Notes: generated from the letters alone by a model not told the origin. A stretch of 51,960 nt of DNA from Octopus bimaculoides (GCF_001194135.2 NC_068983.1:7965761-8017720); one strand, 5' to 3'. Counted from the first letter of the stretch, positions 24,751-51,960 are shown. Program-made: numbers and translations.

Positions 24751-24809
24751 TCAATGGGCTGATTGAGTGAACCTGTCAATAACAAACCTACAATGACCAC
24801 TAGAAACAG
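24751..24809 (-). pseudogene. Candidate downstream exon of a minus-strand peptide gene copy: (T)VSSGHCRFVIDRFTQSAH*
   Basis: The acceptor region TTTCTTCTTTATAGTAGATTTTACCCACAG|CTGTTTCTA resembles TTTTTCTTTGTTGAAGTAAATTTGACTTACAG|CTGTTTCTA at 38015. Only one Cys precedes the stop. Confidence 0.4.
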
Positions 24810-24909
24810 CTGTGGGTAAAATCTACTATAAAGAAGAAATATGCAATGACCATTTTTTTTTATTCCTGTTTTTATAAAATCAGTATAACTCTCAACTTTG
24901 TAATTAAAA

Positions 24910-25190
24910 GCTATACCGACCACCGAACTGGACAGCACTGCATAATACCAAAGATACCGTCTTCTTCATCACATATAGAACCCAGTACTGCAACAGCTAA
25001 GGTTTTAGAGTACCACAGCTGTTTAACATCCTGTCAAGGAACCTATGAGATCTAGGAGTTGGAGATGTCGAAGCGTTCAAAAGGAACTCGGACAAATTTC
25101 TATCTGAAGTCACAAATGAGCACACATCGCGGCAGGAGTCATAAAGAACAACTGCGTTCAACTCGCTTCTCCACCAAAACCAGTACCGAA
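24910..25190 (+). mobile_element. 3' end fragment of a CR1-type LINE
   Basis: Frames give HRTGQHCIIPKIP, QYCNS*GFR-PQLFNIL, VEAFKRNSDKFLSEV and NSLLHQ, like the C-terminal tail following the RT region of CR1-type elements. Confidence 0.6.
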
Positions 25191-25396
25191 AGGAGAACAC
25201 AAAACACTGAAAAGCTGTGCTCCAGCATGGTCCCCAGCCTCTAGCTGAAACCAACAAAAGAATAAAAGAAACGAATAAAATCTGTTATCAATAATAGCAA
25301 GGTTTCACTTTCCATGAATGCAATGAAGTGTGACACGTTAGAAAACTGGTACCAAATAGAAGATTGACATGTCTTTATGCATAAGATAGATCTTAC

Positions 25397-25467
25397 TCCA
25401 TAATCCCACCACAAGCAAGAATCACTCTCCCATAAGTGATGTCTTCATAATTGGTCACAATTTACAT
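25397..25467 (-). pseudogene. Candidate signal-peptide exon with in-frame TGA: MKTSLMGE*FLLVVGLW(T)
   Basis: Acceptor TTTGTTAATTCAG|, ATG at 25448, TGA at 25422-25424, phase-1 donor A|GTAAGA. Splicing to 24809 gives ...LLVVGLWTVSSG, a typical signal-peptide end. Confidence 0.4.
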
Positions 25468-25643
25468 CTGAATTAACAAATTATGGTCTATTCAAACCTA
25501 ATTTCTCTTTCTTTTGTGTGTCTGGTGTCTCCTAATTTCATTTTCTGAACTCACTTCTTCCAACCTATCTATACACACAAACACGCATGTATATATTTAG
25601 ATATGCACGTACACACACACACACACACACACATACAAACGCA

Positions 25644-25682
<39 letters not shown>

Positions 25683-26612
25683 ACACACACACACGCACAC
25701 ACGCACACACACATGTCCCCACACACAAATTATGGAGTGGCAGCAGCGCTAAGCAGTGATGTGTATAAATACAAAGATATTACCAGTTTAAATGTGCCTG
25801 GGGCCTATTCAAACTCGTAAGAAATCTATTCATTGTGTTTTATCATGTAGAAAATTACCCTCTGTAGACAAATGGTGTAAATACACTTAAAATCAGCCCG
25901 CAGCGTCACATAGACTGTGAAGTGCAAGCAGTTAAGCGTGGGTATCGCCTCTTCAGTCGCAGTAACTGGACAATGTGCGCTGCGAGATGGTAAGATAAAT
26001 TGTCTTTTATGATATTCCCGTCATCTTATAATGAATGGTAGCGCTAATCGGCGGTTTACCATAAACGAATTACGTGGTTCGAATGTGCCCCAAGCATATT
26101 TGAACTCGTCTTAACCTTTAATACATAGTCGTCTAATTTCGATTTATATTCCATAGAGTACGTACGATTAAGAGTTAATTAAGGACTTTGTTTCCATCAT
26201 CAGATCTAGGATAAACAAACTGCGTTGATATACAAACAAATATTAATAAAACGATTTTACAACACAGTTATATATTTACTATTTAATGATATGCGTTATT
26301 TAAACCTTCACAGGCATTGCAAACATATGTCATAATATACGAGAAGATTTCAGGGCAAATGTACGGGCAACCGGATGAAATAATTTAGGTATCCCAAGTT
26401 CAGTAAATAGCTTGGAATATATTAACGTTTCACAAAGTATATGAAGCCATGGCTGTTACTATTAGGCTAGCACAAATATCTTGTATACTGTAGCTGTTGC
26501 ATCTAAACACTTCAGACCGAATCATCAAAGCAAAACAGCTGCATAACCGTCAGTGATTGTTGACTCAGAGACGCGCATTTGCTGCTGACGCCGCCGTCAC
26601 CACAATCACCAG

Positions 26613-26675
<63 letters not shown>

Positions 26676-26798
26676 AACAAGAACCAGAGATAATAATGTG
26701 GGCGAATTTTTTGAGTGAAGCTTATAAGACTACCTTCGGCATGGTCATTTTATTTATTATTATTTAATCTATTTTTGCCAAATAAACATACACAGTAT

Positions 26799-26861
<63 letters not shown>

Positions 26862-27133
26862 NNNNNNNNNNNNNNNNNNNNNNNNNNNNNNNNNNNNNNN
26901 NNNNNNNNNNNNNNNNNNNNNNNNNNNNNNNNNNNNNNNNNNNNNNNNNNNNNNNNNNNNNNNNNNNNNNNNNNNNNNNNNNNNNNNNNNNNNNNNNNNN
27001 NNNNNNNNNNNNNNNNNNNNNNNNNNNNNNNNNNNNNNNNNNNNNNNNNNNNNNNNNNNNNNNNNNNNNNNNNNNNNNNNNNNNNNNNNNNNNNNNNNNN
27101 NNNNNNNNNNNNNNNNNNNNNNNNATATATATA

Positions 27134-28236
27134 CAGGGGCTGGACAAAATAATGGAAACATCTAGCATCATAGCTTCATAATTTTGAAATATCTATAAAA
27201 GCGTCAAATCTTGTTTATTTCTACGGATTTCATTTATTATTAATGTTGCTTAATATGTTTTGCTAAAATTGTTATTTCTTTTCTAATATCATTAGAAAAA
27301 GGTAATTAAAATTTATTAAAATGACAGATCTATCGGACTTTCAATGAGGTCAAATAGCCAGTGCTGATATGGCAGGCGCTAGCGTAACGAAAACTGCTGA
27401 AATGTTTGGTGCATCAAGAGGTACTGTCTCGAAAGTAATGACAATCTTTAAGAAAGAAAGAAAAACCTCCTCGTCTGGAAGAAAAACCAAGACTTTCAGA
27501 TAAGAATCGTCGGACTCTTACGCGAATTGTTAGAAAGGATCACAAAAGTACAGCTCCTAAAATTACTGCAAAGCTTAATGACCACCTCGAGAACCAGTTT
27601 CCACAAAAACTGTTCGCCGGGAGCAGCACAAAACCGGATTTCACAGGAGGGCTGCAATCAGAAAACCACTACTTTCAAAAACAAACGTTGCAAATCGTTT
27701 AGATTTGAGTAAAAACCTACAGAAATTTTCCCTAGAGCAGTGGAAGAATGTTATTTTTTCGGGCGAGTCATTCTTTACCTTATTTCCGACCACCGGCCAA
27801 GTATACGTGTGGAGACAGCCAAAAGAAGCATTTTACCCAGACTGCTTTGTTGCAACTGTTAAATTTGTAGGAGGATCTGTGATGATTTGGAGTTGGGGCT
27901 ATATCTTCGAAATCCGCAGGCCCAATGGTTTACTGAATGGCATGATGAACATTATAGTAAAATTGAACATCTTATCTGGCCACCACAATCCCCAGATCTC
28001 AATACTATTGAATATTTATGGTGCATTTTAGAAAAACAAGGAGTCGATATCCTCCACCATAATCACTTCAAGAACTGAAGAATAGACAAAAGTTCCTTTG
28101 GAAGCAATTCAAACTTTGTCCGAGTCCATGCCTTGTAGAATTCAAGCTGTAATTACTGCCAAAGGCGGTCCTAGCCCATATTAAAATAAATTTGTTTGAA
28201 ATTTAAAGGTGTTTCCATTACTTTCTCCAACCCATG
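27134..28236 (+). mobile_element. Tc1 (DD34E) transposon, defective, with internal deletion
   Basis: TIRs CAGGGGCTGGACAAAATAATGGAAACA / TGTTTCCATTACTTTCTCCAACCCATG, TA-flanked. Frames give MTDLSDFQ*GQI, WKNVIFSGES and WPPQSPDLNTIEYLW; the FQDDN region is missing. Confidence 0.9.
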
Positions 28237-28390
28237 TATATATATGTATATATATCTATATATATANNNNNNNNNNNNNNNNNNNNNNNNNNNNNNNNNN
28301 NNNNNNNNNNNNNNNNNNNNNNNNNNNNNNNNNNNNNNNNNNNNNNNNNNNNNNNNNNNNNNNNNNNNNNNNNNNNNNNNNNNNNNNNNN

Positions 28391-28421
<31 letters not shown>

Positions 28422-28565
28422 GTCCAACATGAGGCAATACGTCACATCACGACTATGTTATGCAGCAATAACGGGAGTGGATATTACAATGTTATTAATA
28501 GTAAGATAAGTATAATACACCTCTGAGATTACAGAAACAGCCAAGCAAGTCATAGGAACAGTGAA

Positions 28566-28770
28566 ACTTACCTTGTAAATGTTTCTACGTATAATCTGCA
28601 ATAGGTAGCTGTGCTCTTATATAAGAATCATACTTCAAGCTGTTCCAAGTATAAGACAGTCTGATTAGGTTATCATTTCTTGATTTCAATGGACGTGTTT
28701 GTATCGTCATTAGAAATAGCAGTTATTGAAAATATACCTGTGTTGCTCATTTTCTCACGTTTATGGGCAA
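28566..28770 (-). promoter_or_regulatory. P1: TATA promoter, short non-coding exon 1 and GTAAGT donor
   Basis: The reverse complement aligns over ~200 bp to 40975-41172 (TAAACGTGA, TCAATAACT.CTATTT, CATTGAAAT, ACAGCTTG..GTATGATTCTTATATAAGAGCA). TATA at 28616-28623, donor at 28571. Confidence 0.7.
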
Positions 28771-28879: not shown

Positions 28880-28915
<36 letters not shown>

Positions 28916-29814
28916 CACACACACATATTTTATTGTGTGTGTGGAGAGTCATTCTGTTTTTATGCCTTATTAATTAACACACTCACGGTTTGATTTCCAC
29001 TCATTTACTTATTTATTTTACTAAAATTTTCGTTGATTCCTTCCGTTATCGGAGCTGCGTTCTTTTTGTTTGTTTGTGCGCATGGGTGTGCGTTAGCGAG
29101 CATGTGTATACACATATGTATGCATGAATGTACGTATATATGTATGTGAGAACGTATGCATATGTGTTTATGCATATATAGGTATGCGTGTGTGTGCGTT
29201 TGTATGTATTCTGCATATTTATGTTTGTGTGTGTATTTGTGTGTACCTCTGTCTCCTTGTGCGTGCGTGTTTGGATGTACCTATGAGTATGGATTTGTGT
29301 GACTGTGTATGTGCGTCTGTTATATATGGATGTATGTTTCCATATGTGTCCTTGTGTGTGTGTGTGTGTGTGTGTGTGAAATATGCGTGTGTGCATGTGG
29401 TCATACGTTTCAGTCATTTCTGTATGTATGTGTATATGTGTGCTTGTCTGTCTGTATAACCTATGTACTTATCTATCTACTTGTCTGTCTGTTTACTTAC
29501 ATATCCATTTACCTACTTATATATANNNNNNNNNNNNNNNNNNNNNNNNNNNNNNNNNNNNNNNNNNNNNNNNNNNNNNNNNNNNNNNNNNNNNNNNNNN
29601 NNNNNNNNNNNNNNNNNNNNNNNNNNNNNNNNNNNNNNNNNNNNNNNNNNNNNNNNNNNNNNNNNNNNNNNNNNNNNNNNNNNNNNNNNNNNNNNNNNNN
29701 NNNNNNNNNNNNNNNNNNNNNNNNNNNNNNNNNNNNNNNNNNNNNNNNNNNNNNNNNNNNNNNNNNNNNNNNNNNNNNNNNNNNNNNNNNNNNNNNNNNN
29801 NNNNNNNNNNNNNN

Positions 29815-31069
29815 ACCAATATCACTGTCAGATGTGTGATGGAATCCAACGTAAACAATCAGTTTCTTCCATAGTCTCGAACATTTCTGATTCTCTGAGA
29901 ATATTTACATAGAGATGACCACTAGAGATTTGCTTTATTACTTCACATGAATCTAACGAACATCAATGTCTCTTATTTTAAGAACAGATTCTCTTTCATA
30001 CACCGTTGCCACCATATCTATCTGTTATGATTCAAGCTACTACTATCTAACACCTTTGGATGATCTCTACTCAACCGCTACACAACTGCTACTCGACTGC
30101 TGCTCAACACCCTACCACGGCCAGACTACCTCTATTTATATGTCTTGGGAGGTCCTACTTCTTCGCCTGGGGGAGTCGACACAACACTATCCAATATCAT
30201 AATTGATGTAATATAATTTATAAAAATGCTCCATTATTTTCATTAGTACAAACTTCCAGTACGATCTCTCATCTTTCAAATATTTCTAAATTGCTGTCAT
30301 CACTATAATATCTCATTGCGTCAGTCCTTGCATTAAACTATTTGCTCAATATTTCCATATTAGAACAGCTACCCTATACGACACACTCTCTTATGTCTTC
30401 TCAGGAACATCAAAATTCGGAATGTCATTATTGAGATCCCTAGCCTTTGTACATGTACATTTTAAAGCACATCTCATCTAGTTGTGTAAATTAAATTCAA
30501 ATAAAACAAACTTTTTTATGGAAAGAAAATATGCAAATTCTGAATAGGCTTTTCTAACATATGGTTTTAAAAATTTTGAAACCAGGTCACCAATTTTGGG
30601 GAAGGGCAAAGGTTGATTAATTCAATCCCGATACTCACATGGCACTTATTTTATCGACCTCGAGAGGATGAAAGGCATTGTCAGCCTCGGCGGAATTGCA
30701 TCTCAGAAGCCAAAAGGGTTTTCTAATATATTGATTACTGTATCAGAAGGTCGACATTATATACATCAGACTGATGTATATAATGTGCATTATTTATCGA
30801 GTCGTAAATGTCTCTCAGTTGTATGTTATCTATAGATATTTTATGACTATATTACTGCAACAAATCGTTTGTTAATTGCTTCAAGAAATTCATGTAACTT
30901 GTAAAATAAATTAGAACAATTATATTTCATGAAGATTAGACTAACTAATATTGTGTCATCCATAATAATAAAAATAAAATTATGGAGTTCAAACAACAAA
31001 TAGGTGTGAATAATTGGTCAGCGACATGCGTAGATATTTAGGAAATTAATGAGAGATTTGCGCTGACAG
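29815..31069 (+). repeat. Third, more diverged copy of the intron sequence that follows the signal exons at 45.6 and 50.2 kb
   Basis: Collinear by eye with 46335-47095 and 50972-51948 (TGATGGAA.CCAAC.TAAACAAT, CACATGAATCTAAC, GGAATGTC...TTGAGATCCC, ATAAAATT..G.AGTTCAAA, TGCG.TGA.AG). Confidence 0.85.
30577..30712 (-). mobile_element. Degenerate SINE group A inserted only in this intron copy
   Basis: TTATTTTATCGACCTCGAGAGGATGAAAGGCA..GTCAGCCTCGGCGGAATT. Confidence 0.7.
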
Positions 31070-31260
31070 CAAGCAGTTGTAAATGGAGACCACGTTGAAA
31101 GCTGATTTGTATACTGTAGAAAATATAAATCAAGTTCAAAAGAAGAGATCAAGGAAATGAATGTGGCTGCCTTGATATGATAAGTACGATGTATCTTTGC
31201 CTTGATTTTTAAATATCATACTGCGGAATTAAGACAACGTTTATTCTTTTGTAATTTTAG

Positions 31261-31367
31261 GCGTTAAGGTGAAATATCGACATTATTGCATGGAAATACA
31301 TCATCAAAATGGAAACCCTTGTGATTTCACCGAATTTTTAAAGTGTCTTTATGATCATTGTCAATAA
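31261..31367 (+). CDS. Terminal coding exon of a small secreted four-Cys peptide: (G)VKVKYRHYCMEIHHQNGNPCDFTEFLKCLYDHCQ*
   Basis: Acceptor TTTATTCTTTTGTAATTTTAG|, intact phase-1 frame matching the phase-1 donor of the signal exons, C-x10-C-x7-C-x4-C, and AATAAA at 31363, 31399 and 31408. It lies 192 bp past the conserved intron block. Confidence 0.7.
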
Positions 31368-32218: not shown

Positions 32219-33036
32219 TCACCTGGATCACTTGGATCGACAAGGCTCTTTGATGCCGATCCGGCTCCGCTGGCCTCAGCATTTGCTCCTTTCCTCTCGT
32301 ACTCTCGCTATTTCCCTCCACATTGTTCCAAATATCTTTCTTAAATCATCTTCCCACCTAATTGGCGGTTCTTCCAGTGGTCTCTTCCATACTCACAGCT
32401 ACCAATTGGCAACTGCACGGGTCCACCGATTATCTGTGAACCTTGAGACACGACCGGCCTATTGTAGCTTTGTGTGGTGGTATTCTGCAACGACGTCCTT
32501 AACTCCAGTTCTATCCCTGATCTTGTTCTGGATGTGATTTCTTAGTGAGATTAACATCGACTTTTTCAAGACTCTCTGCGCCGTAAGCAGATATTCTTCT
32601 TCTCCCGTTGTCAAGGCCCAAGTTTCACATGCATAAAAGCTATTCACAGCGTCTCTCGACATCGTCATACGAGGCCCGCAACGAAGGCATAAGGAACTGC
32701 AACGAAGGCATAAGGTACTGCAACGAAGGCATAATGATAAACGGAGAGCTGCTTACCGATATACGATTCGCTGATGACACAGCACTGACACCGGAGAGCA
32801 CGGATGAGCTGCTGATCATGCTGGACATACGGTCCGAGGGCGTACCGATCTGTCGCCTAACAGTTGGAGGCGATGAAATAGAAGAGGCGAGCAGCTATGT
32901 GTGTCTCGGTCATAAAGTGACTAAGAGGAGACAAATGGAGAATGAGATCCCGCGAAAGGTAAAAACGGGATGGAGAGTATTCAACTCGGTGAAGGATGAG
33001 CTAAAGTCGAACCTAGACAAGGCAACTCACTCCAAT
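32219..33036 (-). mobile_element. Truncated RTE-clade LINE with 5' inversion
   Basis: 32219-~32665 (minus): YACETWALT, IRDRTGVKDV, RWEDDL and a GATCCAAGT/GATCCAGGT tail. ~32678-33036 (plus): INGELLTDIRFADD, SYVCLG, GWRVFNSVKD. Confidence 0.85.
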
Positions 33037-33233
33037 CTCTTTTACTCTTTTACTTGTTTCAGTCATTTGACTGCGGCCATACATGCTGGAGCATCGCCTT
33101 TAGTCGAGCAAATCGAACCCGGGACTTATTCTGTGTAAGCCTAGTACTTATTCTATCGGTCTGTTTTGCCGAACCGCTAGGTGACGGGGACATAAACACA
33201 CCAGCATCGGTTGTCAAGCAATGCTAGGGGGAT

Positions 33234-33485: not shown

Positions 33486-33866
33486 TCTTCATTTTTAAAA
33501 AATAAAACAAAAACCAGAAATAATTGAATTAAAAGAAAATTAAAATTATGGAGATGGGTTTTTATAACAAACCAGAATTAAAAATCATCTCATTTCTCTA
33601 TAAACTCTATAAATTCAGAATTAAGCATAACAACAGAACATTTTAGGGCGAGAGAATTCGGTTCTAGCAGGTCCAGCACATGGTCGGTACTATATTTTAT
33701 CGCAGGATAAAATGCAAAGATGTCTTTGACCAGATATAAAAATAGAAATTAAGACGTTTGAAGAAATACAGCAAGGCATTGTCACCGATGCTATCACGAT
33801 TCTTCCCATCATTTCAAGCATTAAAAAAAAAAGTAAACACATATAAATATATACACATACGATGCC

Positions 33867-36177: not shown

Positions 36178-36256
36178 GGTGTTTGTCCCCCCCAACATCG
36201 CTTTACCACCGATGCTGGTGTGTTTACGTCCCCATGATTTATTGGTTCGGCAAAAA
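35780..36256 (+). mobile_element. SINE group B spanning a gap, 3' truncated
   Basis: GGAGTAGCTGTGTGGTAAG...CCTTGGGCAACTGTCTTCTACTATAG...(gap)...GATGCTGGTGTGTTTACGTCCCC. Confidence 0.85.
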
Positions 36257-37419
36257 ATTTACATCTGATTTAACAAATAATGTACAATCTAAATCTAACA
36301 GCACAGCCGTTTGCTTTTTTTTGTCTGGTTTTCCTGAAGTTTCATTTCTCAACTCACTTCTTTCAACGGTTTTCCTTACTTTACTCTGAGAGTCTCTTAA
36401 GCTAAATTATTTTAGGAAGACTACCAATGTATAAAGACTTATTAACAGTAATATTCATTGAATATTCATTGAACAAAGAATACTGTATATTTTAGTTTGA
36501 GCCGGTCAAGAGAATAGAGTTATAGAACTTTAAGACGTTCCAATTAATTAAGGCTTTTACTTGAAGATATTTCATCAATGAACGCTCCCTGAACCAGAAC
36601 AGTTTTGTGTTTAAGATGGGTTGTGTCGCAGTTTCCATGCTTCGAACAGTAATTTAATGTAGCGAGAACTAAAGTTTGCCTTCAGGTTAATATAACTAAT
36701 GTTTCTCTTGTTACATTAATTCATACGATCCAACCAGTATGACGTCATTACACAAAGGTCAATTTACTATAGTGTTTGACGAAAGATGCATCATATTATT
36801 TATAAGGTCCGTATTTTGGCAGGGTTTTGATTCGGTTTATTCTTTGATATAAGATTATTTGCACTGCGGCTATTCTCAGTTTAATTGAGAACCTGAACTT
36901 TTGATAAGTTAAATTTTAGATTTTGTTTATCTACACGTCAATGCTGAAGTTTAGCTCTCACGAAAGTGTACTGGCACCTACTGCAATTTTGATAGCCATC
37001 AATATTTTTGTATAACCGGAAAAACTCGTATGATTATCTGTGAGTATCAGTTATGTTATGTTTGGTAAAGCGATGATGAATAACAGTAGACATACTACAG
37101 TGCCTTGAAGTGTTTTAGTCCATGATTGCATGCGAAATGTCAAAGACTTTAGCAAAATTAAGGTGTTTGTAATCTTCAAAAACCAGATTTTTATCAAAGA
37201 AATTATTTTCTTCATGATAATCGGTTATTTTTTTTTTTACTGGATAATGTTCTATACAACTTTAAATCTGTGGAATATGACAGAAAAAAGTCTGTAATTT
37301 TATCCGCAATTTGGTGTGTACAGGTGTTGGCGTGGATATACATAACACACACACACACACACACATACATGCACGCGCGCAATTGGATATCTTAGCGGAT
37401 CAGTGGTCGATCTGAAGCC

Positions 37420-37901: not shown

Positions 37902-38015
37902 TTACACACAGTGATACATGCAAGACAGGATATAAATAATGATGATTACACATGATTTTCTTTATTGCAATAAATTTGACATGCAGCTGTTTCCAGTCGT
38001 CATCATTAGAAACAG
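37902..38015 (-). pseudogene. Pseudogenised homologue of the four-Cys exon: ...SCMSNLLQ*RKSCVIIIIYILSCMYHCV*
   Basis: Acceptor GACTTACAG|CT. C-x10-C-x9-C-x3-C, ending LSCMYHCV* versus LKCLYDHCQ* at 31.3 kb. In-frame TAA at 37962-37964, and the Cys frame is shifted relative to a phase-1 start. Confidence 0.6.
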
Positions 38016-39379: not shown

Positions 39380-40621
39380 CGGTGTTGGACAAGATAATGG
39401 AAACACATAGCATCATAATTTTGAAATAGCTATAAAACCGACAAATGCTTGTTTATTTTTATGTTTTTGGATTTATTATTAGAGTTGCTGAATATGTTTT
39501 GCTAAAATTGCTGTTTCTTTTCAGATATCATCAGAAAGAGATAGTCAAAATTCATTAAAATGACAGATCTATCGTACTTTCAAAGAGGTCAAATTGTTGA
39601 NNNNNNNNNNNNNNNNNNNNNNNNNNNNNNNNNNNNNNNNNNNNNNNNNNNNNNNNNNNNNNNNNNNNNNNNNNNNNNNNNNNNNNNNNNNNNNNNNNNN
39701 NNNNNNNNNNNNNNNNNNNNNNNNNNNNNNNNNNNNNNNNNNNNNNNNNNNNNNNNNNNNNNNNNNNNNTTGTTAGAAAGGATCACATAAGTACAGCTCC
39801 CAAAATTATTGCAAAGGTTAATGACCACCTCGATGAACCAGTTTCAGCAAAAAACTGTTCGCCGGTCGTTGCACAAAGCAAGATTTCAAAGGAGGGCTGC
39901 AATAAAAAAAAAACCATTACTTTCAAAAACAAAGTTGCAAATCGTTTAGAGTGGATTAAAAACCTACAGAATTGGTCCCTGGAGTAGCAGAAGAATGTTA
40001 TTTTCTCGGACGAGTCATCCTTTACCTTATTTCCGACCACCGGCCGAGTATACGTGTGGAGACAGCCAAAAGAAGTATTTGGTCCAGACTGCCTTCTTCC
40101 AAGTGTTGAACATGGAGGAGGATCTGTGATGATCTGGGGTGGGCTATATCTAGGAAATGCGCCGGCCCAATGGTTTCCCTTCATGGCAGAATTAATAGTC
40201 AAGACTATTTAAGCATTTTATCTGATCAAATTTATTCTATTGTTGCGGAACTGTTTCCGGAGGGAAGCGCAATCTTTCAGGATGATAATGTACCAATTCA
40301 CACAGTTAAAATTCTTACTGAATGGCACGAGGATCATTCAAGTGAATTTGAACATCTTGTCTGGCCACCACAGTCCCCAGATCTCACTATTATTGAACAT
40401 TTATGGTGCATTTTAGAAAAACAAGGAGTCGATATCCTCCACCAGAGGAGACTGTTTTGGCTGAAGAATGGACAAAAATTCCTTTGGAAACAATTGAACT
40501 TTGTACGAGTCCATACTTTGTAGAATTCAAGCTGTAATTACTGCCAAAGGTGGTCCTACCTCATATTAAAATAAATTTGTTTGAAATTTTAAGGTGTTTC
40601 CATTATTTTGTCCAACCCGTG
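39380..40621 (+). mobile_element. Tc1 (DD34E) transposon, defective, same family as 27134-28236
   Basis: Same TIRs. Frames give MTDLSYFQRGQIV, FSDES, FQDDNVPIH and WPPQSPDLTIIEHLW. Confidence 0.9.
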
Positions 40622-40641
40622 TATATATAATATATATATAA

Positions 40642-40974: not shown

Positions 40975-41172
40975 GGCCTGTAAACGTGACTCTTGACACA
41001 AGTGTAATCTCAATAACTACTATTTTGAAGGTTTATAATAAAACTTTCATTGAAATAAACAAGTGATAAACAACTCGGAAGGTGTTATATTTGTGACAGC
41101 TTGGCGTATGATTCTTATATAAGAGCATTCTTACCTCCTGCATCACATACAAAGAAACACTTACTGGTAAGT
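40975..41172 (+). promoter_or_regulatory. P3: TATA promoter, short non-coding exon 1 and GTAAGT donor
   Basis: TATATAAG at 41116-41123 and CTG|GTAAGT at 41166/41167. The TATA-to-donor distance (51 nt) matches P1 (52 nt). Confidence 0.7.
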
Positions 41173-43046
41173 TTTATTCTTCCTATTTTCATTTATCTCT
41201 CTCTCTCTCTCTCTATCTATCTTTCTTTCTGCCTGTCTGTGTCTGTCTGTGTCTGTCTGTGTTTATTTNNNNNNNNNNNNNNNNNNNNNNNNNNNNNNNN
41301 NNNNNNNNNNNNNNNNNNNNNNNNNNNNNNNNNNNNNNNNNNNNNNNNNNNNNNNNNNNNNNNNNNNNNNNNNNNNNNNNNNNNNNNNNNNNNNNNNNNN
41401 NNNNNNNNNNNNNNNNNNNNNNNNNNNNNNNNNNNNNNNNNNNNNNNNNNNNNNNNNNNNNNNNNNNNNNNNNNNNNNNNNNNNNNNNNNNNNNNNNNNN
41501 NNNNNNNNNNNNNNNNNNNNNNNNNNNNNNNNNNNNNNNNNNNNNNNNNNNNNNNNNNNNNNNNNNNNNNNNNNNNNNNNNNNNNNNNNNNNNNNNNNNN
41601 NNNNNNNNNNNNNNNNNNNNNNNNNNNNNNNNNNNNNNNNNNNNNNNNNNNNNNNNNNNNNNNNNNNNNNNNNNNNNNNNNNNNNNNNNNNNNNNNNNNN
41701 NNNNNNNNNNNNNNNNNNNNNNNNNNNNNNNNNNNNNNNNNNNNNNNNNNNNNNNNNNNNNNNNNNNNNNNNNNNNNNNNNNNNNNNNNNNNNNNNNNNN
41801 NNNNNNNNNNNNNNNNNNNNNNNNNNNNNNNNNNNNNNNNNNNNNNNNNNNNNNNNNNNNNNNNNNNNNNNNNNNNNNNNNNNNNNNNNNNNNNNNNNNN
41901 NNNNNNNNNNNNNNNNNNNNNNNNNNNNNNNNNNNNNNNNNNNNNNNNNNNNNNNNNNNNNNNNNNNNNNNNNNNNNNNNNNNNNNNNNNNNNNNNNNNN
42001 NNNNNNNNNNNNNNNNNNNNACTATTTGAGGTTTTTTTTTAGATGTATTTCGATTGATATATTATTAATTGGAACGTTATTCATTTTTCTCCCGTCAGCA
42101 GAACTTATCTTGGTTAATTAAATTTTCTTTAATTCATTTATGCTTCGTTTTCAACAGGAGTTTCGTGGATAATAGGCTCTCAATGTACGAATATCCAGAT
42201 TTATGTTATTTACCAGGATTGAATATGGATTATGTGAAAAACTAATACAAATCGAATGTCATACACGTATTAGAAACATTGAGTACAACTTTGCATTATA
42301 AAGCTAAGTTATATCAAGAACTTCGAGGACAATTTGAAAAAAATCTTGGTATTATGGACATATTTCAGTACTTAGCGTGTTTTTAAGTGCGACCAGTCTA
42401 TTTAGATATATGTGTTTGATATTCATATAAGGAAATGACGTGGAGAAAACGTTAAATGCTTGACGTTTTGTGAAACTAAAATTAGGCAGTGTCCATTACG
42501 TTATTAGTATGAACGAATCCCAGGAGATACGTATATAGAAGAACTGGGTGCAATTATTAGACTTACTGTAGAAATATATAACACACTGCATGAATGTCTA
42601 AAGAGAACAACCCATTTTATAAGAAGTAAAAGTGACAAATATATTGCAAGAAGTTACTTGTTGCTGCAAGTCGTTGTATAAGGTTTTATTTAGGGCTCAT
42701 ATACCCGCGTTTGGATGTAGATTTAATACATATGAAGTAAACAGATCTGTCACAGATGTTAAAGTAGCGACCGTATTAAGTTTTGAATAATTAAAGAATG
42801 TTTGCGTAAGGTCTATGTACACACGACGCAATAGATTTCATTTTTTGTTTTGTTGTTAAAGACATTTAAACTACTGACTCCTACCACATTTCTGATGCTA
42901 ATTTCTAATCCGATATTTAAATACCTGTAATCGCGTCCAAACTTTTTGTAACCAAAAACTTCTATTGTTCATTTTTTCCTGCCGTTTCTATTATGAAAGC
43001 CATCTAAGCGCATATTCCGAGTTACGTTTTATGTTAAGTATATCTA

Positions 43047-43446
43047 GTGGAGACGCAATGGCCCAGTGGTTAGGGCAGCGGACTCGCGGTCGGAGGATCG
43101 CGGTTTCGATTCCCAGACCGGGCGTTGTGAGTGTTTATTGAGCGAAAACACCTGAAGCTCCACGAGGCTCCAGCAGGGGATGGTGGCGAACCCTGCTGTA
43201 CTCTTTCACCACAACTTTCTCTCACTCTTACTTCCTGTTTCTGTTGTGCCTGTAATTCAAAGTGTCAGCCTTGTCACACTGTGTCACGCTGAATATCCCC
43301 GAGAACTACGTTGAGGGTACGCGTGTCTGTGGAGTGCTCAGCCACTTGCACGTTAATTTCACGAGCAGGCTGTTCCGTTGATCGGATCAACTGGCACATT
43401 CGACGTCGTAATCGACGGAGTGCCAACAACAACAACAACAACAACA
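43047..43446 (+). mobile_element. Full-length tRNA-derived SINE group C with (AAC)n tail
   Basis: A box TGGCCCAGTGG, B box GTTTCGATTCC, tail GAGTGCC(AAC)n. Probable TSD TAAGTATA at 43035 and 43447. Confidence 0.9.
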
Positions 43447-43610
43447 TAAGTATACCAAGATAATTAGTTAACATGAATATCTTTCCTCCTTTATTCTGAC
43501 TTAAAGAAGACAGTGGAATCCCATTAGTGAAGTTACCGTCCCTACAACCAACCACTCATCTCTGGCGCATTAGTATTTTGTTGTTACTAACGAAAGGTAA
43601 CTTCTTGCTT

Positions 43611-45163
43611 TTAAAAGAAGCTTTGGTACTTCCTTTTCCTTTGTCCCTTGTAGGATGACAAGCTCTCTTTCTGCAGGAACCAACAAGAACCTCCCATCAT
43701 ATTTGGGTTGAAATTATCTTGGTATCTGTTTTCAATAACTGAGATCTGTTGGGGGAAGCGTTCACCATGCTCGTCACCCACAACTCCAGGGTAGGCCGGG
43801 AAGAAGATGAGAATGTAAAAAATGCATCCCAAGTTTTCTTAATATTTAAGCATGCTTACTACGAGCTCACAGATGTTTTGAGTTTTGTGATTTTCAAGAA
43901 AAGTTTTGACAGAAATGTCGAGTCGTTGATTACATTGCGGATCTGTGGTCCAATAAAACCCCCAGCTTCTAGCTTAGCATCTGTCAATATATTCCTTTGA
44001 ATTTATCCTTTCGATATTAGAAACCACTGTCTTGATGAATAATACCCTTAGTGAAATTTTTCATAAAATCAAGTTTAATGTGAAATGGTGGAAGACATAC
44101 TTTCTGAGGGTGAATAACTGCTGAGTGTTTCACACTGTGTTTACCAATAACGTGTTTAGTTGTAGATGGCTAATCATGTTTCTGGAGAGGTTGTTGTCAT
44201 TTCTGCTGTTCCATAGACACAAAAGAGCATATATTTTGTGTAGCCTAACTATAACCCAAAACGTAATGATATAACTTTAAGATCACCATATTATTCTATA
44301 TGCGATCTTCATATTTCGTGAATCTTAGCAGCAGTTCGATTGATTAATAAGTCTCATTAAAGCCAGCGGTAATACGACATGTATTGCCGTTGTTCAATAA
44401 TACTGCTTCAAGGCTAGCTTTAGAAGAGTCCATGAACAGTCTCCAGTTTTTGAGTCATAGCGAAAATTAAATCCTTTCCATCAGACTACTGAAATCATGG
44501 GAGAAACAAACGTTTTCCTCCCGGATGTGATATGATGAAAACTGTAAATGGCGATGGCGTATATGGGAAACTTTGGTGTTTGGTTGGAGAAGATTCCATT
44601 CTTGAAATCTGGAACCAAGCATGTCTGCCTCTAAATATTGGTAATTCCAAATTGCGCACTAAGTCGTTTAACTTCCTTTTGACAAATGTGAGGAAGTATT
44701 GACATCTGGAACATATACACCATCTATCCCTATTTCTACATCACTAGCAGAATCTTCAGATGAACTACTGTCTGTTGCCGTTGCTGGTGGAACTTGTGGT
44801 GGATTTGTTTTATTATGTGATACTCGTTTTATTGCTGACTCGCAATTTCAATAGAAGGTTTATTGTATTAGTTTCTTTGTGAGACTTAATCTTTGTCAAA
44901 CACAAACCATATTCATTGCTGTGGTTTTTCAGCTCACGCAAAACCCTAGGGATTGAGATCTGCATAGCATTTTTAAAAACTATTCATCCAAGCTATTAAC
45001 AACGAATTGCATTGTGCACAGCAAATATGTGGATCCCAGTCATACTTTTGTTGTCCTAACTTACTGTTAAAATAATATTTGTAGGTAAGTTTAATATTTG
45101 TTCATATGTTTCTACATTGTGGCTCAGATGTATATTGTTCACAGATATAGCAAGAGATGTCAT
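43611..45163 (-). mobile_element. Decayed DNA transposase, Chapaev3-type (CMC superfamily)
   Basis: Minus frames give in order SCYICE, DWDPHICCAQC, LNDLVRNLELP, WRLFMDSSKASLEAVLLNNGN, GDLKV, LGYTK, GFIGPQIR and DEHGERFPQQISVIENRYQDNFNPNMMGGSCWFL, with many stops and frameshifts. The family name is from memory of Chapaev3 proteins. Confidence 0.7.
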
Positions 45164-45609
45164 ACCATATATATATATATATATATATANNNNNNNNNNN
45201 NNNNNNNNNNNNNNNNNNNNNNNNNNNNNNNNNNNNNNNNNNNNNNNNNNNNNNNNNNNNNNNNNNNNNNNNNNNNNNNNNNNNNNNNNNNNNNNNNNNN
45301 NNNNNNNNNNNNNNNNNNNNNNNNNNNNNNNNNNNNNNNNNNNNNNNNNNNNNNNNNNNNNNNNNNNNNNNNNNNNNNNNNNNNNNNNNNNNNNNNNNNN
45401 NNNNNNNNNNNNNNNNNNNNNNNNNNNNNNNNNNNNNNNNNNNNNNNNNNNNNNNNNNNNNNNNNNNNNNNNNNNNNNNNNNNNNNNNNNNNNNNNNNNN
45501 NNNNNNNNNNNNNNNNNNNNNNNNNNNNNNNNNNNNNNNNNNNNNNNNNNNNNNNNNNNNNNNNNNNNNNNNNNNNNNNNNNNNNNNNNNNNNNNNNNNT
45601 ATATATATA

Positions 45610-47095
45610 TATATATAATGTTGGTATTTATAAATTTTACAGGTTCAACATGAATTCTATACTCTTTCCCATCTTCTTGGGAATATACATGATGATTGCC
45701 CTGACCGAAGGTAAGAAGACTGGTCACCCATTCGTTAAATGATTTTTCGACCCTTGTCAAATTGCGCATCTAAATCTAATTTCGGTGCAGCAATTTCATA
45801 ACTATCTAGAATCAATTTGTCTGAGAATTACAATTCAGAAAAGTATGCTCTGTTAACAAGTTCCCTATATACGACATCCATTTTATAGATAAAAATATCT
45901 CAATATAACCCTTAATCGAGCCCTTCGCTTCAACAGACTACATCTGAATATTCACTTCCAGGAATTTTATCCCACCAATAATATCGTAAATGCATTCTGC
46001 TACAGTTCCTTCCATTTCATTCGACGAAGTTCCTTTGCTCTATCCTTTCATTGAAGCAAATCACACATTTACCGATTATTCCTTTAGTTTTTCATAAGTG
46101 TGATTGTGATTATCACACGGCTATGTAAATACCATATTTAGAACGAAACATAACATACTGAAACACATAAAATCTCAATATGATACACAGACATACATAT
46201 GCAAATCAACGTTGGTTGCGGAGCCTTTTTCATCACTCTCAAAAACCGTCGTTCATTGCTACATTGAGCGCTATTCATATTGTCTTTACTGGAATGCGTA
46301 CCAAATAATGGATAATTACAGATCAAGGTTCCATTACCAATTGCAGTATCACATATATGATGGAAGCCAACATAAACAATAAGTTTCTTTCATGATTTTG
46401 AGCATTTCCCCATTCTCAGTGTTTATTCCCAAAGATATAATCACTGGAGACTTGATCTATTACCTTACATGAATCTAACCGATATCAGAGTCTCTTCACT
46501 ATAATAGATGTCATCACTATGATCCCTCTTTTACAGATTCAATACTTCTCTTAACCTATTTGTTCAATATTTCGTTATTAGAGATGCTACTCTCTAGAAT
46601 ATACTTTACTTTTTAGTTTTCTCAGAATCATGAAAATTTGGAATGTCCTATTTGAGATCCCGAGTCTGTGTAGTTGTACATTAAGAACATCTCTTCTAGC
46701 TGTATTATCACCATCACATAAAACATAACGTTCTATGAAAATCATCAATAGGCTTTTCTAGTATATTTACCACTGTCGTTGAGAGTGAGTAAACAATTTC
46801 CAGGAGTAAGTGTCTCGCATTTGTAAATGATATAACAATCATGTTGACTCTATCACAGCAATATATCGTTGTTTGTAAATTGCTTCATGTATTTCATCCA
46901 AATTATCAAATAATTCAGAGCAATTAAATTAATGAAAAACAGAACAATTAAAATCATTAGAGGTCAGATCAACTGATTTTGTGTCGTCTACAATAAAGAT
47001 AAAATTAGGAAGTTCAAAGACAAATTGGTATGGGAAATGGGTGCCGGAATAATGGAGTTATTTACGATATTATAGAGAGATATATGCGTTGAGAG
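45610..47095 (+). repeat. Duplicated gene segment (signal exon plus intron), paralogous to 50199-51948
   Basis: High similarity by eye from TGTTGGTATTTATAAA to TATAGAGAGATATATGCGTTGAGAG, with a few indels and microsatellite differences. Confidence 0.95.
45650..45710 (+). CDS. Signal-peptide exon MNSILFPIFLGIYMMIALTE(G)
   Basis: Acceptor TTTTACAG|GTTCAAC ATG (exon starts at 45643), 20 codons plus G, donor GAAG|GTAAGA. The core is hydrophobic, with a T-E-G cleavage-type end. Confidence 0.75.
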
Positions 47096-47989
47096 NNNNN
47101 NNNNNNNNNNNNNNNNNNNNNNNNNNNNNNNNNNNNNNNNNNNNNNNNNNNNNNNNNNNNNNNNNNNNNNNNNNNNNNNNNNNNNNNNNNNNNNNNNNNN
47201 NNNNNNNNNNNNNNNNNNNNNNNNNNNNNNNNNNNNNNNNNNNNNNNNNNNNNNNNNNNNNNNNNNNNNNNNNNNNNNNNNNNNNNNNNNNNNNNNNNNN
47301 NNNNNNNNNNNNNNNNNNNNNNNNNNNNNNNNNNNNNNNNNNNNNNNNNNNNNNNNNNNNNNNNNNNNNNNNNNNNNNNNNNNNNNNNNNNNNNNNNNNN
47401 NNNNNNNNNNNNNNNNNNNNNNNNNNNNNNNNNNNNNNNNNNNNNNNNNNNNNNNNNNNNNNNNNNNNNNNNNNNNNNNNNNNNNNNNNNNNNNNNNNNN
47501 NNNNNNNNNNNNNNNNNNNNNNNNNNNNNNNNNNNNNNNNNNNNNNNNNNNNNNNNNNNNNNNNNNNNNNNNNNNNNNNNNNNNNNNNNNNNNNNNNNNN
47601 NNNNNNNNNNNNNNNNNNNNNNNNNNNNNNNNNNNNNNNNNNNNNNNNNNNNNNNNNNNNNNNNNNNNNNNNNNNNNNNNNNNNNNNNNNNNNNNNNNNN
47701 NNNNNNNNNNNNNNNNNNNNNNNNNNNNNNNNNNNNNNNNNNNNNNNNNNNNNNNNNNNNNNNNNNNNNNNNNNNNNNNNNNNNNNNNNNNNNNNNNNNN
47801 NNNNNNNNNNNNNNNNNNNNNNNNNNNNNNNNNNNNNNNNNNNNNNNNNNNNNNNNNNNNNNNNNNNNNNNNNNNNNNNNNNNNNNNNNNNNNNNNNNNN
47901 NNNNNNNNNNNNNNNNNNNNNNNNNNNNNNNNNNNNNNNNNNNNNNNNNNNNNNNNNNNNNNNNNNATATATATATGTGCCTATGTGTA

Positions 47990-48212
47990 TGTGTCTTTGT
48001 ATTCGAGCTAGTCCCACGAACACCGGTTGACAACTTTGTTGGTGTGTTTACATCCCTGTACCTTAGCGGTTCAGCAAACGAAACCGAGAAGATATGTGCT
48101 AGGCTTTGAAGAATTAATAAGTTCTGGGGTCGACTTGTTCGATTAAACTTTTCAAGGTGGTGCTCCAGCATGGCCGCAATTAAATGACTGAAACAAGTAC
48201 AAAATAAAAAGG
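47990..48212 (+). mobile_element. 3' half of SINE group B
   Basis: TTAGCGGTTCAGCAAA...TTCAAGGTGGTGCTCCAGCATGGCCGCAATTAAATGACTGAAACAAGTAC. Confidence 0.85.
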
Positions 48213-48247
48213 AAACCAAAGGAAAACCAGTGCAACAGAGCTTTAAC

Positions 48248-48392
48248 GGGGCGAAAGAGTACAACAGGGGTCGCCACCACCCCCTGCCGGAGCCACGTAG
48301 TGCTTTAGATGTTTTCGCTCAATAAACACACACAACAGTCTGGGAATTGAAACCGCGATCCTCCGACAGCGAGTCCTCTGCTCTAACCACTG
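48248..48392 (-). mobile_element. Head fragment of SINE group C
   Basis: GAAAGAGTACAACAGGGGTCGCCACC...GGGAATTGAAACCGCGATCCTCCGAC matches the 16.6-kb and 43.1-kb copies. Confidence 0.85.
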
Positions 48393-49660
48393 TACTACAT
48401 ATATAATTGTGAAAATGATTCAATAAAAAGGATGCTATGCACTTGTTGGCTACATAGTCACTGGTTAACAGTTAAAGTCGATTTACAATGAGTAAAGTAG
48501 TATTTAAGATTTCTGTGAATAACCACAGAGCGGCGTTATCTTTTTAAATGATTGAATAAAGCAAAATTACAAACTTATGATCTGGTCTCTTCGTGATCTA
48601 TCTTTGCTCATGTTCTGCATATATGAAACTCATTCAGTGCTCTCTGTTTCACCTGGGATTGCAGGTCCCTAACCTTTCGTTTTTAACTACATATCGTGAC
48701 AGTTTGATTATATATAATTTTCTGAACAAATTTTGATACATCGAATAAGGTGTTTGAAGTAAATAGAGAAAACACTCAGACACAATAGCTGTAGAAACAG
48801 CTTTGCAGATCTGTAAATACCTTTAGAAACGCAAGAATCTGGCCAGCGAGCCGCTACAAATTATCTAAGTATAGGTATATGTGTGTGTGGGTGTAGGTGT
48901 GGGCTTGTGGGTGGTGGTGTGCGGTGCGTGGGCGTGGGCGGGTATAATTAATGAATTAATTAATACACTATCGTTATAGGAAGATCCGATAGGAAATCTT
49001 GATGTACATGGGGGATGAATTTTTGGCAAGGGATTTTTACGCTGTAAACCGGGCGGTGTACGTCGCTGGATTTCGGTTGACTGGTTTGTTTACATATTCT
49101 TTCACCCTCTTGGATGATGTGTGTGTTTTGCTNNNNNNNNNNNNNNNNNNNNNNNNNNNNNNNNNNNNNNNNNNNNNNNNNNNNNNNNNNNNNNNNNNNN
49201 NNNNNNNNNNNNNNNNNNNNNNNNNNNNNNNNNNNNNNNNNNNNNNNNNNNNNNNNNNNNNNNNNNNNNNNNNNNNNNNNNNNNNNNNNNNNNNNNNNNN
49301 NNNNNNNNNNNNNNNNNNNNNNNNNNNNNNNNNNNNNNNNNNNNNNNNNNNNNNNNNNNNNNNNNNNNNNNNNNNNNNNNNNNNNNNNNNNNNNNNNNNN
49401 NNNNNNNNNNNNNNNNNNNNNNNNNNNNNNNNNNNNNNNNNNNNNNNNNNNNNNNNNNNNNNNNNNNNNNNNNNNNNNNNNNNNNNNNNNNNNNNNNNNN
49501 NNNNNNNNNNNNNNNNNNNNNNNNNNNNNNNNNNNNNNNNNNNNNNNNNNNNNNNNNNNNNNNNNNNNNNNNNNNNNNNNNNNNNNNNNNNNNNNNNNGT
49601 ATATATATTTATAAATGTATGTGTGTTTGTGTGTGTATATATACATATACATACATATAT

Positions 49661-49720
<60 letters not shown>

Positions 49721-50152
49721 TTATATATAAGCAAAGATGCAAGCTCTAAAGTCTCCCTAGGGCTCCACGCACTAGTTGCACTGACATGTAATATTCGTAG
49801 CCACTTCATCATGGCTGAACGCTCGAACGGATTTTACTGCAACGTTTCAACTCCAAGACGACATCTGCTCCAGCTGGCTAACGATGATGCAGAGCTGTAT
49901 CTGATAAATTTCAGGCAGGAGAGCGAACCCCCACCACTTTCTGGGGACTGGATGAATAAACCACATTTGGTTTCGGGGTACTTCAGTCACTCCTCAGTAC
50001 TAGACACCTTGTCTGCTAAAGATGGCAGTATCTCAACCCTGCATGCAATATANNNNNNNNNNNNNNNNNNNNNNNNNNNNNNNNNNNNNNNNNNNNNNNN
50101 NNNNNNNNNNNNNNNNNNNNNNNNNNNNNNNNNNNNNNNNNNNNNNNNNNNN

Positions 50153-50198
<46 letters not shown>

Positions 50199-50228
50199 GT
50201 TGGTATTTATAAATGTTACAGGTTCAGC

Positions 50229-50289
50229 ATGAATTCTATACTCTTTCCCATCTCCTGGGGAATATACATGTTGATTGCCCTGACCGAAG
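50229..50289 (+). CDS. Signal-peptide exon MNSILFPISWGIYMLIALTE(G)
   Basis: Acceptor TGTTACAG|GTTCAGC ATG (exon starts at 50222), donor GAAG|GTAAGA at 50290. Both splice sites and the frame are preserved relative to the 45.6-kb copy. Confidence 0.75.
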
Positions 50290-51960
50290 GTAAGAAGACT
50301 TGTCACTCATTCGTTAAATGACTTTTCAAACCTTGTCTATTTGCACATCCAAATCGAATTTTGGTGCAGCAATTTCATAATTGTCTAGAATCAATTTTCC
50401 TGGGAATTACAATATACACAACTATCCTCTGTTAACAAATTTCCTATATATGAATTTCATTTTATAGATAAAAATATCTCAGTATAATCCTTAATCGATC
50501 CGTTCAGTTCAGCTTGTTCCCTTCACGATTATTTCTTCCTATTCATGTCTTCTTCCACAGACCACGTCTCAATATTCACTTCGAGCAATTTTATCTGACT
50601 AATAATAACAGCAATTTGAGACACAGACGTACATATATCCACACACACACAAACACACATAAACACAGACACGCACACACACACACACACAGACAAGCAA
50701 TCACACACACACAAACACACAAATACACATACGCACACACCACATACACCACACAATTATACTAAGCAACAATTCATTGTTTTATTAAAGCATTTTATGG
50801 AACTCGGAACCAAGATGTGCCTCTTCTGATTATATGCAAATCAACGTTGGTTGCGGAGCCCTTTTCATCACTCTCAAACACTGTCGTTCATTGCTACGTT
50901 GACAGTTATTCATGTTGTCGTTACTGGAATGCGTACCAAATAATGGATAATTACAGATCAAGGTTCCATTACCAATTGCAGTATCACATACATGATGGAA
51001 ACCAAAATAAACAATATGTTTCCTTCACGGTTTTGAGCATGTCCTCATTCTCAGAGACTATTTCCAACGATATAATTGCTGGAGACTTGATCTATTACAT
51101 TACATGAATCTAACCGATATCAGAGTCTCTTGCTCTAACAAAATACAATTTCTCTCTTATACACCATTGTGAGCATATCTATCCAATATAAAAAATGATG
51201 TAAGAAATTTTGTAAGAATGCTTAATGATTTCTTTCAGTAGGTACCTCATGTACGCTGTTCTATCTTTCAAACAGTTCTAAATGAATCTCATGAAATCAC
51301 TGGGTACCATACATTTGTAATGTTTGTCGATATTACTATAAAGAAACATGACGTAATAGGTTTCATCATTATGATCTCTCTTTTACAGATTCAATACATC
51401 TCTTAACCTATTTATTCAATATATCGTTATTAGAGATGCTACTCTCTAGAATACACTTTACTTTTTAGTTTTCTGAGAATCATGAAAATTTAGAATGTCC
51501 TATTTGAGATCCTGAGACTGTGTAGTTGTACATTACGAACGTCTCGTCCAGGTGTATTATCACCGTCACGTAAAAGATAACGTTCTATGAAAATCATCAA
51601 TAGGCTTTTCTAGTATATTTACCACTGTCGTTGAGAGTGAGTAAACAATTTCCAGGAGTAAAAGTCTCGCATTTGTATATTATATAACAATCATGTTGAC
51701 TCTATCACAGCAATATATCGTTGTTTGTAAATTGCTTAATGTATTTCATCCAAATTATCAAATAATTTAGAGTATTTAAACTAATGAGAAACAGAACAAT
51801 TAAAATCATTAGAGGTCAGATCAACAAATTTTGTGTCGTCTACAATAAAGATAAAATTAGGAAGTTCAAACGACAAATTTGTATGGGAAATGGGTGACGG
51901 AATAATGGAGTTAATTACGATATTATAGAGAGATATATGCGTTGAGAGTAAATTGGTTTA

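Follow-up and report, generated by a model that had tools for sequence, protein, structure and literature searches.

We analysed 51,960 nucleotides (nt) of the Octopus bimaculoides genome (GCF_001194135.2, NC_068983.1:7965761-8017720; hereafter the window), which, judged from sequence, probably hold part of a multigene cluster that is taxon-restricted and encodes small, disulfide-rich secreted peptides; we put the probability of this reading at roughly 60%. The window is AT-rich (35.6% G+C across its length), is broken by 16 runs of N and is dense in microsatellites and transposons. Family copies on its plus strand are labelled A to C and those on its minus strand E to H. The locus used for comparison, L001, comes from Octopus vulgaris (OX597816.1:70233044-70269349, GCA_951406725.2; 36.3 kb without N), and the window aligns to it from about 29.8 to 47.1 kb with an identity of roughly 75-93%. 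A first-pass annotation had placed a tandem and inverted cluster of small-peptide genes at 24751-51960 and guessed a cephalopod source. The guess was right, as the sole protein relative comes from O. vulgaris, and family members do lie inside that range; the cluster continues outside it, with E, F, G and H occupying 14.6-22.4 kb on the minus strand.

Gene E is complete and intact, gap-free from signal exon to stop codon, and is the sole complete copy readable in the window. Its parts are as follows (slashes mark splice sites here and below):

22344-22277, minus strand: signal-peptide exon of gene E, 68 nt, phase 1, encoding MNSTFCLVMLNLFMITSGIV(G)
20902-22276, minus strand: intron 2 of gene E, gap-free
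20901-20762, minus strand: terminal exon of gene E, 140 nt, beginning gattttag/GT GAT..., encoding (G)DRVATCKFLCRQQHANSIDIFKCMADNGCKFVPLYELKQGNDFRY and a stop codon, with the spacing C-x3-C-x12-C-x5-C

The signal exon was discovered by a scan for an ATG, a hydrophobic open reading frame (ORF) and a GTRAG donor. It reads ttttacag/GTCGAAAATG...GTTG/gtaaga, with the leader GTCGAAA followed by ATGAATTCT, and the terminal exon lies about 1.4 kb downstream of it. Within the intron, the blocks 22002-21846 and 21405-21137 are collinear with 29851-30018 and 30725-30987 in the intron of copy A, the first block also matches the introns of B and C, and the 3' flank of E is likewise collinear with A, B and C. 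The first-pass annotation had assembled its precursor from two paralogues and was uneasy about this composite, a worry that the complete and gap-free gene E answers.

Two more signal exons, which had been recognized beforehand at 45643-45710 and 50222-50289, are confirmed with splice sites, leader and lengths read directly from the DNA:

45643-45710, plus strand: signal-peptide exon of gene B, 68 nt, phase 1, encoding MNSILFPIFLGIYMMIALTE and a split Gly codon
45711-47095, plus strand: intron 2 of gene B, broken off by the assembly gap 47096-47966
50222-50289, plus strand: signal-peptide exon of gene C, 68 nt, phase 1, encoding MNSILFPISWGIYMLIALTE and a split Gly codon
50290-51960, plus strand: intron 2 of gene C, continuing beyond the end of the window

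Each of the two has a ttacag acceptor, a 7-nt leader, a G/gtaaga donor and a phase-1 end; the B exon reads ttttacag/GTTCAAC ATG...GAAG/gtaaga. As judged by their sequences, B and C are a recent tandem duplicate (45601-47095 and 50179-51948 are 88-94% identical) and look intact over the readable part. By alignment, the terminal exon of B is expected about 160 nt inside the gap 47096-47966 (position 47095 aligns to L001 25957, and 26120 is the first nucleotide of the O. vulgaris exon), and that of C about 160 nt past the window end (51960 aligns to L001 12148, with the O. vulgaris exon starting at about 12312).

The signal exon of E shares with B and C its 68-nt length, the 7-nt leader, the MNS start, the splice sites and the phase, at only 57% nucleotide identity. 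A 25-nt motif at the start of the signal exon occurs three times in the window, in B, C and E with 0-2 mismatches, versus zero occurrences expected. When neutral decay of the B exon to the divergence of E was simulated, an ORF at least as hydrophobic as that of E survived in 3.7% of trials, a figure that leaves out the kept length, ATG and splice sites. In the putative signal peptides, the best 12-residue Kyte-Doolittle means are 2.27 for B and 2.32 for E. The close pair itself says nothing about selection: the exon is conserved no better than the intron and all three coding differences between B and C are non-synonymous, so that this comparison is uninformative.

Terminal exons were sought independently by a blind scan that required an acceptor rich in pyrimidines, a phase-1 ORF 25-70 codons long containing four or more cysteines, and a poly(A) signal. 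The scan returned exactly A, E and F, which are mutually homologous, against a shuffle mean of 0.45; a single match might be due to chance, but three matches homologous to one another are not. In the window, a profile of the terminal-exon region matched A, E, F and G and nothing else, and the terminal exons of these four copies are homologous, with a conserved acceptor region. Besides E, the copies in question are:

17703-17564, minus strand: terminal exon of copy F, 140 nt, encoding (A)LTQVNCESYCRYRYRFETTTHYLIRCLIRRCRWHYPQGYQIPGRL and a stop codon, C-x3-C-x15-C-x4-C, with a ttttag acceptor and AATAAA downstream
about 16290-16183, minus strand: decayed terminal exon of copy G, (V)LTLRQCRKTSRRLRRYDPTSVPFRECLNDKCNAA and a stop codon, a pseudo-exon
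15253-14694, minus strand: intron remnant of copy H, the block that normally stands just upstream of the terminal exon
29815-31260, plus strand: intron-2 relic of copy A, beginning at a gap edge, with a short interspersed element (SINE) inserted at about 30572-30708
31261-31367, plus strand: terminal exon-like ORF of copy A, with a ttttag acceptor, GVKVKYRHYCMEIHHQNGNPCDFTEFLKCLYDHCQ and a stop codon, then AATAAA signals

By sequence, G and H are relics, A is probably another, and F is an intact terminal exon without a signal exon of its own. In copy G the acceptor AG is gone (ttttGT) and the second cysteine has become Ser, and in copy H the exon site is filled by a tandem SINE pair at 14231-14690. 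Local alignment revealed no own signal exon for F, G, H or A above the level of shuffled sequence; that F serves as an alternative 3' exon of E is speculation. An intact E beside decayed G, H and A would fit birth-and-death turnover in a tandem and inverted cluster, the mode of evolution that had been anticipated for this locus.

The O. vulgaris locus supplies the pairing of exons that is cut off for B and C in the window. It shares with the window the TATA/exon-1 module described below, the signal exon, a homologous intron and acceptor, and the first cysteine unit. The O. vulgaris signal exon is 68-71 nt long, ends in phase 1 and encodes MNSILSFIFLGIYMMIALTE; two such exons, starting near L001 10357 and at L001 24117-24184, match the start motif with 0 mismatches. 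By manual count, the exon of gene 2 is identical to that of window gene B at 63 of 68 nt, and the flanks are syntenic. Three intact terminal exons, ending at L001 1855, 12507 and 26306, encode peptides with eight cysteines such as AGEVECPFDCQAELKRKHIALTYESMQKCNQEHCKCRYMCYKTHYGKITMDDYKKCAAGCP, and nhmmer, run with a profile of A, E, F and G, matches all three as well as the orthologue of copy A. Whereas E and F contain one cysteine unit, the O. vulgaris genes reached contain two (8 Cys), and 8-Cys terminal exons were not found in the readable part of the window. The signal exon beginning MNSIL joins, at the homologous position, an 8-Cys exon that reads AGEVECPFDC...CAAGCP.

Within L001, positions 1-10238 and 10654-20863 form a 10.2-kb direct tandem duplication of 96.5% identity that holds genes 0 and 1, whose terminal exons differ at 1 of 189 nt.

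When a protein database of 5.8 billion sequences was searched with a profile of E, B+A and C+F, one protein matched, the O. vulgaris model P0001 (E=1.8e-5; 113 aa, annotated 'Hypothetical predicted protein [Octopus vulgaris]', OX597816.1:70.23-70.27 Mb). This family, otherwise an orphan, is represented in the window by the signal exon (B, C, E), the terminal exon with acceptor and first cysteine unit, and the TATA/exon-1 module, and on the sequences found, with O. vulgaris as the sole relative, the cluster seems confined to octopuses. The P0001 model, spanning L001 10001-26306, combines gene 1 exon 1, the gene 1 signal exon out of frame (HEFYTFSHLLLGNIHDDCPDRR), the gene 2 signal exon and the gene 2 terminal exon; its start ATG lies inside the exon-1 module and is found in one of four module copies. 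A second gene called on L001 ends at 1855, which is the stop codon derived here for gene 0. The O. vulgaris annotation merged transcripts, proteins and ab initio predictions (PMC10700109). We suggest dividing the P0001 model into two genes, each encoding about 80 aa.

Upstream of the signal exons, the readable window holds two copies of a module with a TATA box GATTCTTATATAAGAGCA, about 50 nt and a donor GGTAAGTTT; three had been proposed:

41080-41185, plus strand: TATA/exon-1 module upstream of B, TATA block at 41110-41127 and donor ctg/gtaagt at about 41166
28657-28553, minus strand: TATA/exon-1 module whose TATA box GATTCTTATATAAGAGCA occupies 28612-28629 and is followed by a very short exon without coding sequence and by donor GGTAAGTTT

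In O. vulgaris the module occurs at L001 9934-10037 and 20561-20664; the latter, upstream of gene 2, is orthologous to the copy at 41080-41185. TATA block and donor are 100% identical in all four copies, including the diverged one at 28.6 kb, and the module is otherwise much more diverged than these two elements. The minus-strand module may supply gene E, the next family exon downstream on the same strand, with its promoter and exon 1. The expected order of non-coding exon 1, signal exon and mature-peptide exon holds, and the conserved TATA/donor module supports exon 1.

Copy A had served as the model for the mature peptide, and here the comparison between species changes the picture. The intron copy leading to it exists (29815-31072, 65-75% identical to the introns of B and C, an older and diverged third copy; orthologous to L001 34877-33090 on the minus strand at 88-93%), as do the acceptor, the ORF and AATAAA, and acceptor, ORF and poly(A) signals are retained in both species. 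The exon itself is probably a relic. In O. vulgaris the coding part of the orthologous exon begins at L001 33086 on the minus strand and encodes GVKVKYRHYYMKIHLQNGDPGDCTEFLKCLYDHRQ and a stop codon; it is of equal length and matches at 92 of 102 nt, with flanks of 93.5% identity over 200 nt upstream and 83% over 200 nt downstream. One of the four cysteines of copy A is retained in this orthologue. The position of the first family cysteine is Tyr in both species, and a different stray loop cysteine has been gained in each. With copy A taken as a relic, its C-x10-C-x7-C-x4-C spacing is not the family framework, as had been assumed, and is best read as an accident of decay.

The same comparison bears on the proposed ~55-aa precursor, in which an MNSIL exon would be spliced to the A-type exon. 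That this model is literally right appears to us highly improbable, even though the intron of A is homologous to those of B and C and the acceptor, ORF and poly(A) signals of A persist in both species. In O. vulgaris a signal exon is followed, without a gap and at the homologous position, by an 8-Cys exon; for the orthologue of A, the next 1.4 kb past the shared intron gave no signal exon that scored above shuffles in local alignment, and a pattern search of both strands of L001 found no signal-exon homologue beyond those of genes 1 and 2. The cysteines of A, moreover, are not conserved. Since A would be a relic and the MNSIL exon is paired with eight cysteines in O. vulgaris, the 55-aa composite should be the product of no gene; it also has no relative in the protein database. 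The composite arose only because the terminal exon of B falls in the gap 47096-47966 and that of C past 51960, and because neither can be read it is uncheckable inside the window. The composite peptide should not be synthesised or used as a search query as it stands.

Aligned as proteins, E, F and the O. vulgaris genes share the positions of C1 to C3, which gives C-x3-C-x12..18-C-x4(5)-C as the family framework. In the O. vulgaris B-type genes, the second unit is exactly C-x3-C-x15-C-x3-C (C-RYM-C-x15-C-AAG-C). Between O. vulgaris genes 1 and 2, all eight cysteines and the reading frame are kept although the second half of the terminal exon is only 56% identical (first half 84%, adjoining intron 90%); by a rough calculation, the chance of retaining the four second-half cysteine codons at that divergence is about 0.002. 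In the first half, dN/dS is 1.17 (15 non-synonymous and 3 synonymous changes), which, at 18 substitutions, is suggestive of accelerated evolution of the mature peptide. From the end of the signal exon to the first cysteine there are only 5-6 residues and no dibasic site; on visual inspection, TEG, TSG and ALT would place small residues at -3/-1. Most of the predicted mature peptides carry a net positive charge (by manual count, about +2 in E and about +6 in F). Sequence searches of the PDB gave no match at E<=10, and a search of Rfam gave none either. A literature search with peptide strings from the window and from O. vulgaris returned no papers, and an O. vulgaris study of salivary-gland peptides has none of them in its supplementary files.

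These data also allow us to weigh an alternative, namely that the locus is dead or never-functional DNA, with chance ORFs, splice-like sites and cysteines in a duplicated AT-rich segment, or with unexpressed pseudogene relics. Copy A, which loses three of four cysteines between species and whose dN/dS of 0.46 rests on only ten changes, would fit this, as would the plain decay of G and H, the equal conservation of exon and intron in B and C with three of three coding differences non-synonymous, the chance expectation of 0.45 exon-like matches per window, and the lack of an annotated homologue beyond one automated model. Against it stand the survival in E of exon length, ATG, both splice sites and hydrophobicity at 57% identity, the retention of all eight cysteines and the frame in O. 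vulgaris paralogues only 56% identical, the invariance of TATA box and donor in an otherwise diverged module, and the mutual homology of the three blind-scan matches. On balance we consider dead DNA unlikely, while granting it serious weight.

A second alternative, that the repeated unit is a piece of a mobile or satellite-like interspersed repeat and the 'genes' are passengers or chance ORFs, seems very improbable to us. The region is indeed full of Tc1/mariner elements, SINEs and other repeats, and copies occur in both orientations. The copies, however, form one local cluster, the one O. vulgaris locus fetched aligns along about 29.8-47.1 kb of the window, no repeat termini were seen, and the conserved parts are TATA box, splice sites and cysteine codons. 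The DNA common to A, B and C is interrupted by stop codons in every frame and shows no conserved reading frame, and is thus non-coding.

We propose, then, that the window encodes precursors built as follows. A presumably very short, non-coding exon 1 would lie about 20 nt after the conserved TATA box; the 68-nt exon 2 carries the ATG, encodes a predicted hydrophobic signal peptide of 20 residues and ends in phase 1; and the terminal exon completes a Gly or Ala codon and encodes the mature peptide with no pro-region. The mature peptide is made of C-x3-C...C-x3/4-C units, one in E and F and two in the O. vulgaris B-type genes, each of which may fold as a two-disulfide helix-loop-helix. The sequences themselves establish the homology, the exon structure, the conservation across species and the cysteine framework. 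If transcribed and secreted, such peptides would be disulfide-stapled effectors working outside the cell in defence, in venom or saliva, or as a chemical signal, among which the sequence does not choose. The cluster has evolved by local tandem and inverted duplication followed by decay.

Several observations weigh against the proposal of a secreted-peptide cluster. The locus is transposon-rich and gap-rich. The signal-peptide status is judged by hydrophobicity alone, and the substitution counts behind dN/dS are small (15 non-synonymous versus 3 synonymous). The peptides of E, A and F and the B/C signal peptides have no match in the 5.8-billion-sequence database beyond one automated O. vulgaris model, which is itself mis-fused from two paralogues; other annotated octopus proteomes, if included in that database, would lack calls for these genes. 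Finally, orthologues of E, F and G are absent from the 36 kb of O. vulgaris fetched.

The predicted peptides resemble two known systems. The alpha-hairpinin or CS-alpha-alpha motif is XnC1X3C2XnC3X3C4Xn, exemplified by plant alpha-hairpinins, scorpion kappa-hefutoxins, OmTx, and Conus flf14a-c and vil14a (PMC7191063; for CS-alpha/alpha scorpion peptides, PMC11722136). Like these, the octopus peptides are short, would be secreted and have two cysteine pairs, the first spaced x3, with a loop of 12-18 residues. In the O. vulgaris genes the second unit alone fits the strict motif; the window copies fail it, since the second pair is spaced x5 in E and x4 in F rather than x3. We regard this as a resemblance of pattern: sequence similarity to solved structures is lacking, and the helix-loop-helix fold with C1-C4 and C2-C3 disulfides that marks the class would be a prediction here. 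Among molluscs, the conotoxin superfamilies combine a conserved signal with a hypervariable mature region. The mussel MgCRP-I peptides likewise form a secreted cysteine-rich multigene family with a conserved signal and a hypervariable mature region (PMC4558851). In common with both, the octopus family has signals that are almost identical between close paralogues, mature peptides that appear to diverge fast around fixed cysteines, separate exons for the signal and the mature part, and birth-and-death in tandem arrays. It differs from them in having no pro-region and another cysteine framework, and in the absence of sequence homology; the conotoxin-type layout of signal, pro-region and mature peptide is not found in it.

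The remaining features of the window concern gaps, flanks and repeats. One segment had been taken for a broken family homologue:

37902-38015, minus strand: 3'-flank DNA aligning to the O. vulgaris flank, not a family member

It gave no tblastn match at E<60, its DNA alignment fell below shuffles and the terminal-exon profile misses it. None of the proposed exons crosses a gap. On either side of gaps 29526-29814, 41269-42020 and 45190-45599, the window is collinear with the gap-free O. vulgaris locus; the flanks of gap 38104-38613 are collinear, at 75-77% identity, with paralogous 3'-flank copies there, which predict a distance of 423 nt against the 510 estimated. We considered a minus-strand terminal exon concealed in gap 38104-38613 and dropped it; the paralogous 3' flank explains the gap's flanks equally well, so no hidden exon is claimed. 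Runs of (CA)n or (TA)n border many of the gaps in the window and are probably their cause. A (TAT)n microsatellite of 63 copies at 3913-4102 yields poly-Leu/Asn/Tyr/Ile pseudo-ORFs in every frame.

Other DNA is repeated around the gene copies. Copies H, G and F each have upstream of them one copy of a further non-coding module (15387-15645, 16928-17178 and 19797-19996 in minus-strand sense; 69-77% identical) that is not present at E, A, B or C and in which no TATA box or signal exon was found. Pieces of the A 3' flank recur, direct and weak (67-75%), at 24.3-25.6 kb, inside the presumed first intron of E (24374-24541 resembles 33614-33781, and 25459-25564 resembles 36256-36367); local duplication thus extends past the gene copies themselves.

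Two decayed Tc1/mariner copies, at 27127-28254 and 39373-40640, are 84-87% identical to one another and each is interrupted or bounded by gaps; the ORF 40170-40523 resembles Sleeping Beauty transposase (PDB 5cr4, E=7.7e-11). A SINE-like repeat of about 220 nt is present in at least eight copies of 84-92% identity (6911-7154, 10696-10933, 14231-14690, 20089-20474 and 30572-30708 in the window; L001 33614-33779) and had no Rfam match at the gathering threshold. Two of these sites, at copy H and beside copy E, are tandem pairs where family terminal exons or 3' flanks are expected. An element of about 320 nt stands just upstream of signal exon C (49729-50052) and recurs at 38649-38759 (plus strand), 38771-39037 (minus strand) and L001 5632-5932 and 16268-16568; at 38649-39037 a partial direct copy abuts a full inverted one. 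It holds a 106-codon open stretch, whose suspected likeness to a P-element-like transposase fragment was given up because the ORF has no protein homologue at E<=1. Another interspersed repeat (16497-16691, 43046-43240, 48250-48395 and L001 34205-34502; 85-89% identical, both orientations) has one copy where the 3' flank of B is expected. By eye only, the ORFs 493-1055 and 32608-33138 look like fragments of a LINE-type (long interspersed element) reverse transcriptase. At 43274-43832 on the minus strand are two adjacent ORFs, one of which (...DEHGERFPQQISVIENRYQ...) may resemble the C-terminal dimerisation region of hAT-type transposases.

The family is new and uncharacterised but of a familiar kind. 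To our knowledge, few families of small secreted cysteine-rich peptides have been described in cephalopods, and short multi-exon genes of this type easily escape annotation. A bolder picture, which we offer tentatively, is that of Octopus-restricted secreted disulfide peptides with one or two hairpins, missed or mis-modelled by annotation, whose mature regions diversify under selection while cysteines and signals are held; it would amount to a new cephalopod class of venom, antimicrobial or chemosignal peptides, in which gene birth can be seen next to the migration of cysteines (E, A) and the death of copies (G, H). If expressed, the genes described here would add a lineage-specific peptide family, probably on a helical-hairpin scaffold, to the cephalopod secretome, with possible roles in saliva or venom, mucosal defence or chemical communication, and the cluster would illustrate, in compact form, how birth-and-death evolution proceeds while cysteines shift.

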